This document shows, piece by piece, positions 1 through 36,030 of a DNA stretch of 64,000 nucleotides. The stretch lies in the sequence record LR756501.1, one strand, 5' to 3'. Numbering within the stretch: the stretch's first letter is position 1; every line of letters begins with the position of its first letter. Under the pieces are notes generated by a model, which was not told the origin of the DNA, ran no database searches, and worked only from the letters and a program-made list of their open reading frames with translations. The position numbers were made by a program, and so were the translations under genes.

Positions 1-1
1 G

Positions 2-418
2 ATTCGACGCCATAACTGTTTGATCTACAGGGTCCCAATTTACAATACCAACTTTCTTTTCGATGAAACCAGCTTTCCAAGCGTCTATGAAAAATCTCTG
101 CTCATGTTTCCAATAATCAACTTCACAAGTTGAAATTTCTTTATCCCAATCGAAAGACATATTCATTCTTTTCATTTGGTCTCGCATGTTATCAATATTG
201 GCATCAGTCCATTCCATAGGATGAATGTTATTTTTGATAGCTGCGTTTTCTGCTGGCATACCAAAGGAATCCCAACCGATAGGGTGGCAAACTTCGTAAC
301 CTTTATTTCTCCAGTACCTGGCTATTGCGTCAGATATTGTATAGTTTCTCATATGACCCATGTGGATATTACCGGATGGGTAGGGTATCATAGGAACAAC
401 AAACATTTTTTTCTTCAT
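2..418 (-). CDS. leuS: Leucyl-tRNA synthetase, N-terminal part (runs off window start)
   Basis: Not in ORF track. My translation: MKKKMFVVPMIPYPSGNIHMGHMRNYTISDAIARYWRNKGYEVCHPIGWDSFGMPAENAAIK..., with the HMGH (HIGH) motif and GWDxFGxPAENAA typical of bacterial LeuRS. ATG overlaps the TGA of the upstream gene. Confidence 0.95.
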   Translation of the reverse strand, partial: MKKKMFVVPMIPYPSGNIHMGHMRNYTISDAIARYWRNKGYEVCHPIGWDSFGMPAENAAIKNNIHPMEWTDANIDNMRDQMKRMNMSFDWDKEISTCEVDYWKHEQRFFIDAWKAGFIEKKVGIVNWDPVDQTVMASN

Positions 419-1185
419 TTCTTTTCCTTTCTCGTGAAATGATCTATATTTATATTATATTTTTTTATAGAATAATAAACGTAATGTTTCACTTTACTAT
501 TATAATTAACATTCAAATTATCAGCTATATCTCGATATGATTTTGATTTTTTAACAACAGTTTCTAAAAATTCTTTATCTAAACTTTTATCAAAATTTCC
601 ATAATTTCTTTTATTTACATAATCTTTCCAGTTTTCATTTTCAAGAATATCCAATTTGTCTTCGTCATATCTAAAATAACAACTTCCCGCACTACCTTTT
701 AAATCACAACTAAATTTTATTTGTTGTCTAAATATTCCAGTTTCTCTCTCGGCTCCTCTTATGCTAATGAATTTTTTTATTGGATTTAAATTTAAATCAT
801 ACATTATTATTGATCTTTTTCTGGTGTTAGATATTTTCATCAATTTTTTACTCTCTTCGCTGTGTTTTTTACCCAACCAAGATACTCCGTCACCACCATC
901 AGTTTGATTTTTTAACTTAAACCCCCAAACTTTAAATTGGCATATCCAATATTTTTCTAAGCTATTGATATTATTATCATCACCTATATCCAATATTTCT
1001 ATAATTGGAACCAATTTTTTATTTTTTAAATATTTTAACCATTTATTCTTTTTTGTCCAAGGTTCCAATTGAATATAATAATCAGAATAATGTCTTTTAA
1101 CTCTTTTTTCAATATTGTTAGTTTTCCCAATATATTTTATATCACCGTCTTCTGGATCTGTTAAAGTGTAAATGAATTGTTCCAT
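415..1185 (-). CDS. GIY-YIG homing endonuclease with NUMOD3-like DNA-binding segment
   Basis: N-terminal FIYTLTDP...KYIGKT; LE+YWI; NQTDGGDG; GKKHSEESK (NUMOD3-like). Confidence 0.9.
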   Translation of the reverse strand: MEQFIYTLTDPEDGDIKYIGKTNNIEKRVKRHYSDYYIQLEPWTKKNKWLKYLKNKKLVPIIEILDIGDDNNINSLEKYWICQFKVWGFKLKNQTDGGDGVSWLGKKHSEESKKLMKISNTRKRSIIMYDLNLNPIKKFISIRGAERETGIFRQQIKFSCDLKGSAGSCYFRYDEDKLDILENENWKDYVNKRNYGNFDKSLDKEFLETVVKKSKSYRDIADNLNVNYNSKVKHYVYYSIKKYNINIDHFTRKEKK

Positions 1186-1240: not shown

Positions 1241-1314
1241 TGGCCCTACCCAGACTCGAACTGGGACATCAAGTTTCTAAGACTTGCGCGACTACGCTAT
1301 TACGCCATAGAGCC
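1241..1314 (-). tRNA. tRNA-Leu(UAG) with short (4-nt) variable loop
   Basis: GGCTCTA/TAGGGCC acceptor, A73; CAAGT-CTTAGAA-ACTTG anticodon arm; variable ATGT; CCCAG-TTCGAGT-CTGGG T-arm; D-loop lacks GG. Confidence 0.75.
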
Positions 1315-1319
1315 ATTTG

Positions 1320-1392
1320 TAACCCTGCACGGAGTCGAACCGAGATATTCTGGTTTTAAGCCAGACGCCACTACCAATTAGGCTACAGAGTC
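1320..1392 (-). tRNA. tRNA-Leu(UAA) with short (4-nt) variable loop
   Basis: GACTCTG/CAGGGTT acceptor, A73; 3-bp GCC/GGC D-stem; TCTGG-CTTAAAA-CCAGA; variable ATAT; TTCGACT T-loop. Confidence 0.8.
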
Positions 1393-1402
1393 ATTTTTAT
1401 TG

Positions 1403-1486
1403 TACCGAGGATGGGAGTCGAACCCACACGTCCGTAAGGACACTGGTTTTTGAGACCAGCGCGTCTACCAGTTCCGCCACCTCGGC
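1403..1486 (-). tRNA. tRNA-Leu(CAA)
   Basis: Canonical class II cloverleaf; CTGGT-CTCAAAA-ACCAG; long variable arm. Confidence 0.95.
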
Positions 1487-1489
1487 ATG

Positions 1490-1610
1490 TGATGAAGTAA
1501 TAGGATTCGAACCTATATGACTGATTTCTCAGCGGTTAGCCCTTGTACTTCGGTCTTTCCCATTTTCACCCTAAACGGGTGATACGTTTCCATTTTAGTC
1601 CTACTTCATC
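1490..1610 (-). ncRNA. 121-nt tRNA-like RNA, identity unclear
   Basis: Perfect 9-bp terminal helix GATGAAGTA/TACTTCATC followed by A-CA; T-arm ATAGG-TTCGAAT-CCTAT; internal hairpins TCACCC/GGGTGA and CTGA-GAAA-TCAG; no canonical anticodon loop. Confidence 0.6.
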
Positions 1611-1612
1611 TG

Positions 1613-1696
1613 TGCGGTTAAGGGGACTCGAACCCCTACGTCCTTGCGGACACCAGCCCCTCAAGCTGGCGCGTCTACCAATTCCGCCATAACCGC
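1613..1696 (-). tRNA. tRNA-Leu(GAG)
   Basis: Canonical class II; CCAGC-TTGAGGG-GCTGG. Confidence 0.95.
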
Positions 1697-1702
1697 GTTG
1701 TG

Positions 1703-1784
1703 TGCCCTTGACAGGACTCGAACCTGCACATCCGAAGACACTAGATCCTAAGTCTAGCGCGTCTACCAATTCCGCCACAAGGGC
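1703..1784 (-). tRNA. tRNA-Leu(UAG)
   Basis: Canonical class II; CTAGA-CTTAGGA-TCTAG. Confidence 0.95.
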
Positions 1785-1803: not shown

Positions 1804-1888
1804 AAAATAAGGTTGGATTCGAACCAACATTCTCCATCTTTGCTTTTTCTCTGCGTCCAATGGTGTGTTACCCTTACACTACTCTCCC
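1804..1888 (-). pseudogene. Degenerate tRNA-like element
   Basis: D-arm GTAGTGTAAGGGTAACAC and T-arm GTTGG-TTCGAAT-CCAAC retained; acceptor poorly paired; anticodon arm expanded. Confidence 0.5.
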
Positions 1889-1960: not shown

Positions 1961-1989
1961 CAAAAAACCCAATCATTGCTGATTGGGTC
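1961..1989 (-). terminator. Attenuator terminator of the Leu tRNA/LeuRS operon
   Basis: ACCCAATCA-GCAA-TGATTGGGT followed by TTTTTG. Confidence 0.85.
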
Positions 1990-2028
1990 TCTGTGACTTC
2001 ATTCGAGAAGAATTCATCCACACATACT

Positions 2029-4383: not shown

Positions 4384-4552
4384 ATAAAGTTAACATTAAA
4401 ATAAGATAAAGGAATACTGGGAAAAATCCCATCCAGGAAAAGAGTACGAATAATAATCTAACAAGAAATGAATCTATGTTAAAATATTCAGCCAAACCGC
4501 CACATACTCCACTTATTACAGCGTCATTTTTTGATTTGTAAAGTTTTTTCAT
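4370..4552 (-). CDS. PspC-domain protein
   Basis: [25 protein letters not shown]...VRLLFV...YLILMLTL. Confidence 0.9.
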
Positions 4553-4569
4553 TTTTGATTTTATTAAAA

Positions 4570-4967
4570 TTAATAATCCCAGTCTTCTTCTCCGTAAGGA
4601 TCTTCCGTAGTGAAAACCCTAACAATAATTTTTTTGATAGCGTTATAATGAAAATAAAACTCCATAGATTCAGACATATCCCAACGCCAACGTCTATCAA
4701 ATCTTACACCAACAACTTGATAGTAATCACGATATTGAATATCAAATACTTCACCTTCGTGGTTCTTGTATTTTATTCTAGAACCTATTTTAAGTTTTCT
4801 CATTTATCCCAATTTTCCTCACCGTAAGGATCAACAGGAATATAGTTAGCACCAGCCTTCTTCTTGATTTCATCCAAGATAGAAAAGATAGCTAACTCTC
4901 TAACGCTCTTAGCTATATTAGCCTTAACGATAGTCAGTTTAATCTTATTTTCTACTGATGTGAACAT
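4570..4967 (-). CDS. Two small proteins ending in DPYGEE(N/D)WD (4570-4803; 4800-4967)
   Basis: 4800-4967 (55 aa, MFTSVENK...[13 protein letters not shown]-like end [13 protein letters not shown]) is missing from the ORF track. Confidence 0.7.
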
Positions 4968-5016
4968 AATACCTGTTATTTATACAAAGATAAAAATAAA
5001 TTTCAAAATAAAAAAA

Positions 5017-5988
5017 TTAAATATAAATAACTCGAAATTCTCCTATCTTACTATTCAATTGATCACCAACAGCTTTATCGTAATCATTCATATATTTCAA
5101 CTCCTTCACTACCGTCACGTCACCATTTCTTTTCTCCACAAACCCAACAACAGAAGTGTCCCATAAAGCATACAACTCATCATTACTCGAACACATAGCG
5201 TACTCTTTTATCTTTTCTTTATCATAATTATCCCTATTATAGACAATTAAAATAATAACATCATCAAATAACTTCTCTACTCTGTTATTTTTATCGTTGA
5301 ATTCCTCAATAGATGGCAACTTATCAAGCTCGTAATAACAAACACCAGTCTTTTGAACCTTCTTATTAAGATAGTCTATTAAATTCTTGATATTCAATAC
5401 ATTATGAGTGTGTCCTTTAATTTGGCTAAGTAAGAATTCTATTCTTTTTTTCTTATATGTTTTCCAACCAACCCATCTAAATTCCTTGTAGATTTTATTT
5501 TCCCAATCTAACATTTCAATAAACGGTGCGTCAAGAATCCAAGTATCTAATTTGTTGAATTTTTTACAAAGTCCTTCTGTTGAATCGTGTGACTTTGTGG
5601 CCATTATAACGTCTGTAATTTTGATAATGTCTTCGTCAACTCTCCAGTCTGATATAGATATTTTAGTATCAATTAGTTCTTTATTAAAAGTGGACATCAT
5701 GTATTCGACGCTCTTTTCCTCGTTATCGTTACGTTTAGTATCGTAGACTATATCGTGAAAAATAGCGGCAATCATAAGGATATTGTATTCCCTCTCGCTT
5801 ACTTTTTTATCCTTATATAAATCTTTTATACCCTCTAACATTTCATTTAGATGGTTAGGAGTATGCCAGTACCTATGTGGTTCGCCCCAACGATCCATAA
5901 TAGAATCAACTGTAATATTGAATCCGTATGATCTAGCGATATCAACTGCTTCAGAAAGAAGTTTCTTAAATTTATTTACTTTGGTCAT
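5017..5988 (-). CDS. HD-superfamily phosphohydrolase fused to a degenerate CoaD/PPAT-like domain
   Basis: RYWHTPNHL...AAIFHDIVYD...NEEKS; C-terminus follows the PPAT pattern (EKLFDDVIILI...N; VVGF...VVKELK..DY...LN) but lacks HxGH. Confidence 0.7.
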   Translation of the reverse strand: MTKVNKFKKLLSEAVDIARSYGFNITVDSIMDRWGEPHRYWHTPNHLNEMLEGIKDLYKDKKVSEREYNILMIAAIFHDIVYDTKRNDNEEKSVEYMMSTFNKELIDTKISISDWRVDEDIIKITDVIMATKSHDSTEGLCKKFNKLDTWILDAPFIEMLDWENKIYKEFRWVGWKTYKKKRIEFLLSQIKGHTHNVLNIKNLIDYLNKKVQKTGVCYYELDKLPSIEEFNDKNNRVEKLFDDVIILIVYNRDNYDKEKIKEYAMCSSNDELYALWDTSVVGFVEKRNGDVTVVKELKYMNDYDKAVGDQLNSKIGEFRVIYI

Positions 5989-35842: not shown

Positions 35843-35911
35843 TAGCCCGTAAGAGATTCGAACTCTTGTTACTGGAGTAATCCAGGGTACTTTCCGCTAT
35901 ACGAACGGGCC
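35843..35911 (-). ncRNA. Anticodon-less tRNA-Glu-like RNA
   Basis: GGCCCGT/ACGGGCT; CTGGA-TTAC-TCCAG (4-nt loop). Confidence 0.8.
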
Positions 35912-35961: not shown

Positions 35962-36030
35962 TAGCCCGTAAGAGATTCGAACTCCTGTCACTGGAATAAT
36001 CCAGTGTCCTTTCCGCTAGACTAACGGGCC
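35962..36030 (-). ncRNA. Anticodon-less tRNA-Glu-like RNA
   Basis: GGCCCGT/ACGGGCT; CTGGA-TTAT-TCCAG (4-nt loop). Confidence 0.8.

Follow-up and report, generated by a model that had tools for sequence, protein, structure and literature searches.

Among class II tRNAs, the long variable arm is dispensable for the bacterial synthetase in the leucine tRNAs alone; the serine and tyrosine synthetases need theirs. Recognition by the bacterial-type leucine synthetase (LeuRS) does not involve the anticodon and need not involve the arm. The initial annotation of the locus described here started from the statement that bacterial tRNA-Leu is class II, which is a good rule but one with documented exceptions, in Streptomyces (PMC6614811), in mycobacterial tRNA clusters (PMC6582537) and among annotated phage genes. 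A tRNA-Leu(CAA) of Streptomyces coelicolor is of type I, its variable loop being 5 nt long, and the single LeuRS of this species has been shown experimentally to leucylate both types (Fan et al., NAR 2019; PMC6614811). The LeuRS of Escherichia coli and that of one other Streptomyces do not charge the Streptomyces type I tRNA-Leu, and acceptance is decided by the leucine-specific domain of the enzyme (PMC6614811). A short-loop tRNA-Leu(TAG) has been remarked in mycobacterial tRNA clusters (PMC6582537). In E. coli the leucine identity set consists of A73 together with U8–A14, A15–U48, G18–U55 and G19–C56, and in Aquifex tRNA-Leu deletion of the arm mainly lowers affinity, while changes at G18 or G19 are severe (PMC2377443). 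Our literature search found no paper on short tRNA-Leu in huge phages, on its breadth across phages or on the clade of minimal LeuRS described below. The proviso in the initial annotation that short-arm tRNA-Leu might already be documented in this phage group therefore holds for the kind itself but, in the literature searched, not literally for huge phages.

The DNA analysed here, which we call the window, comprises 64,000 nucleotides and is identical to positions 193061–257060 of LR756501.1, the unannotated record of a 735,411-bp uncultured phage genome. This was the largest complete phage genome then known; it belongs to the Mahaphage clade and has a predicted host among the Bacteroidetes (PMC7162821). 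All of the 19 tRNA genes that ARAGORN calls in the window lie on the minus strand. Five tRNA-Leu genes form one block on that strand (1240–1784), and all five are confirmed by the Rfam tRNA model (RF00005; gathering score 29). The features of the region are as follows, in window positions.

-2816 to -2527 (LR756501.1 190244–190533), minus strand: class II tRNA-Leu(UAA) with a group I intron, beyond the LeuRS gene and outside the window
1–418, minus strand: 5' part of the LeuRS gene (whole gene 508 codons, running past the window start to window-relative -1108)
415–1185, minus strand: GIY-YIG/NUMOD homing-endonuclease-like ORF of 256 aa between the tRNA cluster and LeuRS (Pfam GIY-YIG E 4.9e-7, NUMOD1 E 1.2e-5)
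1241–1314, minus strand: type I tRNA-Leu, anticodon UAG, 74 nt (ARAGORN tRNA-Leu(tag) 1240–1314; RF00005 57.3 bits, E 9.5e-10)
1320–1392, minus strand: type I tRNA-Leu, anticodon UAA, 73 nt (ARAGORN tRNA-Leu(taa) 1319–1392; RF00005 60.0 bits, E 1.8e-10)
1403–1486, minus strand: class II tRNA-Leu (CAA) with a long variable arm (ARAGORN; Rfam 56.4 bits)
1489–1611, minus strand: tRNA-like element of 123 nt between two class II tRNA-Leu genes (from fold and sequence)
1613–1696, minus strand: class II tRNA-Leu (GAG) (ARAGORN; Rfam 56.5 bits; 91.7% identity to its ortholog in L244, a related viral contig)
1703–1784, minus strand: class II tRNA-Leu (UAG), duplicating the short UAG decoder in long-arm form (ARAGORN; Rfam 61.3 bits)
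1804–1888, minus strand: weak tRNA-like gene at the cluster head (Rfam tRNA 38.5 bits; not called by ARAGORN)
1963–1992, minus strand: terminator-like hairpin preceding the cluster (13-pair stem and T run; a pattern match only, from a consensus scan)

The two genes nearest to LeuRS had been read as UAG and UAA tRNAs with a Leu-type 3-bp D stem, A73 and 4-nt variable loops, and ARAGORN, Rfam and direct reading of the letters all confirm this. In both, the acceptor stem has 7 bp, the D stem 3 bp with positions 13 and 22 left unpaired, and the T stem 5 bp; the anticodon loop has 7 nt and the variable region 4 nt, the T loop is canonical, and U8 and A73 are present. The Leu-type core (U8–A14, A15–U48, the 3-bp D stem, unpaired 13:22 and A73) is present in both, whereas canonical class II tRNA-Leu has a variable arm of more than 10 nt and the variable region of these genes is 4 nt. 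In the UAA gene the seven pairs of the acceptor stem include G1·U72 and U4·G69 and are followed by U8 and A9. Its D arm has the stem GCC/GGC, unpaired U13 and U22 and the D loop AAUUGGUAG, with G18 and G19 adjacent; the anticodon loop is CUUAAAA and the T arm contains a single mismatch, U50·U64. The UAG gene has G1–C72, U4·G69, the D stem GCG/CGC and a perfect T arm, but one extra base separates G18 from G19, an arrangement that is unique among 150 aligned members of the family described below. The lowest-energy RNAfold structure of the UAG gene is not a cloverleaf and lies 2 kcal/mol below the cloverleaf, minimum energy being a poor criterion. An encoded CCA is absent from both short genes and from the CAA, GAG and UAG class II genes upstream of them.

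Comparison with the described systems places these genes close to several of them. With the S. coelicolor type I tRNA-Leu they share the short variable loop, the canonical D/T elbow (in the UAA gene with adjacent G18 and G19) and coexistence with class II tRNA-Leu, but they are phage-borne, their anticodons are UAA and UAG, their variable loop has 4 nt, and the LeuRS beside them is without the leucine-specific domain that was found to be decisive (PMC6614811). The short tRNA-Leu genes of Leptolyngbya phage Lbo-JY46, Mycobacterium phage Kykar and Sulfitobacter phage phiCB2047-B and of the mycobacterial clusters have the same 3-bp D stem, AAUUGG-type D loop, A73 and a variable loop of 4–5 nt. 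Lbo-JY46 even carries an adjacent UAG and UAA pair, 4 nt apart, in which the UAG gene is 73.6% identical to ours. Unlike the phage studied here, these three phages have no LeuRS. Canonical class II bacterial tRNA-Leu has A73, A15–U48 and the Leu-type D arm in common with the short genes, and the same loop spacing around G18G19 apart from the extra base of the UAG gene, as well as G1·U72 in UUR readers (E. coli tRNA-Leu(UAA); PMC6614811), and differs in having the long variable arm. Animal mitochondrial type I tRNA-Leu is alike in its short variable loop and leucine anticodons, but in the phage genes the T loop is still canonical, and G18G19 is retained as well in the UAA gene.

In our view, the two genes are probably working type I leucine tRNAs. 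Both transcripts would fold into an ordinary L shape that retains the features read by bacterial LeuRS, namely A73, U8–A14, A15–U48, the elbow formed by G18G19 and the T loop (at least in the UAA gene), and the Leu-type D arm with its 3-bp stem, with the 4-nt variable loop taking the place of the long arm. Because a bacterial-type LeuRS is indifferent to the anticodon and does not necessarily depend on the arm, such short tRNAs should be chargeable with leucine. We infer that the genes are transcribed, processed, CCA-tailed and charged with leucine, presumably by the LeuRS of the phage, that of the host or both. Once charged, the tRNA with the UAA anticodon would read UUA and UUG and that with the UAG anticodon would read CUN, and the leucine module as a whole, five tRNA-Leu genes followed by a minimal LeuRS, would supply the commonest leucine codon of the phage. 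Acceptance by an arbitrary host LeuRS is not to be assumed, since the E. coli enzyme and one Streptomyces enzyme refuse the Streptomyces type I tRNA (PMC6614811). Two details of the genes themselves run counter to this reading. The base inserted in the UAG gene falls between G18 and G19, where, by analogy with the substitutions that cripple charging in Aquifex (PMC2377443), it might impair leucylation, and the UAA gene has the U50·U64 mismatch, which is absent from its L244 ortholog. The short UAG copy could be weak or redundant, given that a long-arm UAG duplicate lies in the same cluster.

A BLAST search of each 73–74-nt gene against 50,697 phage records returned, apart from the record itself, only weak matches (E 0.05 or worse). 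Under these matches lie the annotated short tRNA-Leu genes of Lbo-JY46, Kykar and phiCB2047-B. A pattern in which a Leu-type D loop and a UAA anticodon loop are followed closely by the T loop matched at least 119 contigs in IMG/VR. Among the matches listed, ARAGORN found 196 short tRNA-Leu genes (163 distinct), 93% of them with A73. Most of these (162 of 196) encode CCA, in which the window genes differ from them. In the same listed loci the tRNA-Ser genes are long in 91 of 91 cases and the tRNA-Tyr genes in 31 of 34, while of the leucine genes that the pattern had not selected 73 of 104 are short. That the leucine arm alone is mostly missing from these phage arrays matches LeuRS being the sole class II synthetase able to dispense with it. 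When the pattern was made indifferent to the arm, about nine short and 80 long viral tRNA-Leu(UAA) genes were found. At roughly one in ten viral tRNA-Leu(UAA) genes in that sample, the short-arm form is recurrent and not the oddity of one phage, which corrects a textbook simplification. Type I tRNA-Leu is therefore a kind already known and widespread, to which the huge-phage pair adds a member.

The cloverleaf of the family is supported by covariation. We aligned 150 short tRNA-Leu genes with MAFFT, without fitting the alignment to structure, and counted pairs against the cloverleaf. Standard pairs occupy 92.8% of the cells (55.3% in shuffles), 1170 cells are changed on both sides (322 in shuffles) and the covariation score is 0.98 (0.23 in shuffles); in a control in which the partner strand was slid, at most 47.8% of cells paired. 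Compensatory change was seen at all 20 stem pairs. In these 150 sequences 13:22 is unpaired in 95%, A73 is present in more than 90%, and A14, A15, G18, G19, U48 and the T-loop core are invariant. The commonest 1:72 pair in the alignment is G1·U72 (70 of 150), which occurs in about half of the UAA and CAA readers and in 10 of the 33 UAG readers. The same pair is found in the UAA gene of the window, in the class II CAA gene and in the spliced class II UAA gene.

A covariance model was built from 36 short tRNA-Leu members of other phages, with the window genes left out. The UAA gene is its top match in the window, at 68.2 bits, and the UAG gene scores 57.8 bits; the three class II leucine genes of the cluster reach 57–65 bits despite the penalty for the arm, which puts them on a par with class I tRNAs. 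A tRNA-Lys(UUU) of the window scores 65.7 bits, and the separation of Leu from Lys by this model is weak, so that these scores indicate resemblance and are not proof of identity. LysRS reads the anticodon. Descent from tRNA-Lys was considered as an argument about identity and rejected, the short genes having the Leu-type unpaired 13:22 and an extra D-loop base.

The same pattern was applied to bacteria, with one genome per species. At least 120 loci matched, and 116 of those listed carry a short tRNA-Leu(UAA), which makes at least 116 species. In 105 of the 120 listed loci the short tRNA-Leu(UAA) is the sole tRNA gene within 8 kb; these belong mostly to Actinomycetota but also to cyanobacteria, Planctomycetota and others. 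In these bacteria, a type I tRNA-Leu(UAA) standing alone within 8 kb appears to be the housekeeping UUA decoder.

The bacterial genes bear on the suggestion, raised in the initial annotation, that the short form evades host nucleases. On this reading class II tRNAs would be recognised through the long arm by a toxin or nuclease of the host, and loss of the arm would leave the short copies usable during infection. There is a precedent in the arm-dependent targeting of tRNA-Ser by MenT3 (PMC11541572). The window phage also has something of the look of a back-up set, with a short and a long UAG gene in the cluster and a short and a long, intron-bearing UAA gene in the genome. We know of no toxin that targets tRNA-Leu through its arm, and our search for one returned none. 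The same short design, moreover, appears to be the housekeeping tRNA-Leu(UAA) of many bacteria, and would therefore not in itself be a phage counter-measure. The tRNA-Ser and tRNA-Tyr genes in the same phage arrays keep their arms, which counts against evasion, although weakly, because their synthetases need the arm. We consider defence evasion distinctly improbable as the explanation of the short arms.

Relatives of the locus were found by a LeuRS protein search of viral contigs. In L244, whose LeuRS protein is 86% identical to that of the window phage, both short genes occur in the same order directly before LeuRS. The UAA gene is 94.5% and the UAG gene 95.9% identical to the L244 orthologs. 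The LeuRS DNA is 80.4% identical between the two, falling to 54% at third codon positions. Both short tRNA genes are therefore under purifying selection, their identity of about 95% standing against 54% at the synonymous sites of LeuRS. The earlier argument that the genes are functional is upheld, expression and charging being presumed. The split of G18 from G19 in the UAG gene is also present in the L244 ortholog, which indicates that the odd D loop is tolerated and is not fresh damage. In the L244 cluster the CAA decoder and both UAG decoders are short, whereas the window has a long CAA gene and one long UAG gene. Short and long forms have thus replaced each other within the module.

These comparisons also speak to the view that the genes are charged with some other amino acid or are decaying relics, the UAG copy with its disturbed G18G19 in particular. 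No other of the 150 family members has G18 and G19 parted by a base as this copy does, a duplicate of it with a long arm lies 390 nt upstream, the UAA copy has its T-stem mismatch, and the window holds several clearly aberrant tRNA-like genes. Decay is at odds with the conservation of both copies at about 95% against 54% at synonymous sites, and with an odd D loop held in common with the ortholog. As to another amino acid, both genes have C3–G70, no long arm and leucine anticodons. The absence of a G3:U70 pair excludes AlaRS and that of a long arm excludes SerRS, and by established identity rules the synthetases other than these two and LeuRS read the anticodon. The missense tRNA proposed in the initial annotation accordingly finds no support, since neither gene carries an identity mark of another anticodon-independent synthetase, and the reading as a whole, missense or relic, strikes us as very improbable indeed.

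Returning to the reading of the pair as working leucine tRNAs, the codon usage of the phage is in its favour. Across 45 long ORFs of the window, 45% of the leucine codons are UUA, as had been anticipated for so AT-rich a genome. The short UAA gene had further been called the sole UUA decoder of its cluster. This is correct as far as the five genes go, but the genome has another, a class II tRNA-Leu(UAA) split by an intron that lies beyond the LeuRS gene. The group I intron of 205 nt follows U34 (Rfam RF00028, gathering score 50; 56.6 bits, E 1.1e-13), and from the joined exons ARAGORN calls an 85-nt tRNA-Leu(taa). Cyanobacterial and plastid trnL(UAA) genes classically carry their intron at this same site (PMC4476775). 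No intron interrupts the counterpart of this gene in L244. The intron was spotted by eye from an ORF translation resembling that of a structured RNA and was confirmed by Rfam on a short stretch; an Rfam scan of 24 kb at the gathering threshold missed it.

That a phage LeuRS adjoins the tRNAs had been noted from the start, and the enzyme is of bacterial type by the equivalog model TIGR00396 (leuS_bact), which it passes with 557.9 bits against a cut-off of 548.4. The gene starts at position 418 and encodes 508 residues, including the motifs HMGH and KMSKN (of the HIGH and KMSKS type). Against solved LeuRS structures the protein aligns in three blocks, and the CP1 editing, leucine-specific and C-terminal domains have no counterpart in it. 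In the 877-residue chain of PDB entry 7nua, residues 227–428, 587–630 and those beyond about 780 are unmatched in the phage protein, and the editing-domain family PF13603 in Pfam gave no match to it. Three phage copies share the same end point. The Mycoplasma mobile LeuRS (PDB entry 3ziu, 637 residues), which naturally lacks CP1, aligns in one block (E 4.7e-84); the phage enzyme differs from it in being also without the leucine-specific domain, the C-terminal domain and about 30 N-terminal residues. An AlphaFold model made for an 86%-identical relative found by the protein search (pLDDT 91) superposes on bacterial LeuRS with a query-normalised TM score of 0.89 and a target-normalised score of 0.53–0.59, so that 53–59% of the full-length structures is covered. 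Among all solved structures the best target coverage is on 3ziu, with a target-normalised TM score of 0.72–0.78. The two arginines of a conserved motif that contact A73 in E. coli LeuRS (PMC6614811) align to a proline and a threonine in the phage enzyme.

By protein search the minimal LeuRS belongs to a clade of at least 45 clusters of 510–547 aa with 61–86% identity, none of which contains the editing-domain Pfam family, and some of which lie on huge-phage-sized contigs of 200–550 kb. Three relatives of 645–647 residues keep the editing domain. In complexes of bacterial LeuRS with tRNA the C-terminal domain binds the tRNA elbow. The absence of this domain from the phage enzyme is a further point against the reading of the genes as working leucine tRNAs. 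The minimal LeuRS is directly preceded by a cluster of tRNA-Leu genes, short forms among them, in five of nine related loci (the window, L244, L245, L249 and L253), and these five clusters always hold class II genes too. In the other four (L248, L251/L252, L254 and L255) no tRNA-Leu was found within 6–8 kb of LeuRS. LeuRS homologs occur in only 20 of the 50,697 phage records, and none of these is one of the Mycobacterium, Leptolyngbya and Sulfitobacter phages that carry short tRNA-Leu.

These data allow the proposal of a dedicated pair to be weighed, in which the minimal LeuRS of the phage would do most or all of the charging of the short tRNAs while the host LeuRS would reject type I, giving a leucine channel insulated from the host. 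The recurrent synteny in the five loci and the conservation of the minimal LeuRS as a clade of this size are in its favour, as are the failure of some bacterial LeuRS to charge type I tRNA-Leu (PMC6614811) and the broad suggestion of the genome authors that tRNA variants of phages are charged by phage synthetases (PMC7162821). However, class II tRNA-Leu genes sit in the same clusters, for which reason the synteny marks a leucine module and not a link specific to the short forms, and four related LeuRS loci are without a nearby tRNA-Leu. Few phage records have a LeuRS homolog, and those with annotated short tRNA-Leu do not. In more than 100 bacterial species with a type I tRNA-Leu(UAA) as a lone chromosomal gene the cell's own LeuRS must serve it. 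The phage enzyme is, furthermore, without the leucine-specific domain to which acceptance of type I has been assigned (PMC6614811). The orthogonal pair with the phage LeuRS envisaged in the initial annotation is thus possible but not required, since phages without LeuRS carry the same kind of tRNA and the cluster mixes short and long forms. We regard it as unlikely, though less so than defence evasion, and retain the reading of the genes as ordinary working type I leucine tRNAs.

A larger role can be imagined for the module, and it too seems to us unlikely. It would be a self-contained leucine-decoding system of this huge-phage clade, in which a LeuRS stripped to the catalytic core and helical domain would have a way of recognising both type I and class II tRNA-Leu that cellular enzymes do not show. 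This LeuRS would prefer the short tRNAs, which the host enzyme would handle poorly, and leucine decoding, that of the dominant UUA codon above all, would survive a shutdown of host LeuRS or tRNA-Leu. A minimal LeuRS beside a mixture of type I and class II tRNA-Leu is in any case a natural setting in which to ask how LeuRS tells the two shapes apart, and, being without an editing domain, whether a phage can tolerate unedited leucylation.

The homing-endonuclease-like ORF between the cluster and LeuRS has no equivalent at the matching position in L244; only 10 nt separate the last tRNA from LeuRS there. An HNH-like ORF was read by eye in the tRNA-Leu/LeuRS module of L245 (about 4440–5180), and L253 has GIY-YIG ORFs near thymidylate synthase (8678–10555). 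The differing places of homing-endonuclease-like ORFs in related modules suggest mobile-element traffic in the region. The hairpin at 1963–1992 is probably the end of the preceding transcription unit.

Several further elements resemble tRNAs without being canonical. The element at 1489–1611 has an acceptor-like stem of about 9 bp and a canonical T arm, with no recognisable D or anticodon arm; neither ARAGORN nor Rfam calls it, the family model gives only a weak partial match (16.1 bits), and no counterpart was found in the L244 cluster. In the gene at 1804–1888 the two strands of the acceptor stem are not complementary to each other. This gene is one of five non-canonical tRNA genes on the minus strand, the others being at 10990–11100, 11186–11273, 12350–12440 and 14036–14153; one of the five has an 8-nt anticodon loop (ARAGORN 'ttac'), two have insertions of about 40 nt and two are weak matches to Rfam only. 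The stretch of the genome covered by the window is thus rich in aberrant tRNA-like genes. Two more, of 69 nt each, lie at 35843–35911 and 35962–36030 on the minus strand (Rfam 47 and 54 bits); in both the anticodon arm is three bases short, and ARAGORN gives a 2-nt 'anticodon' in a 6-nt loop.
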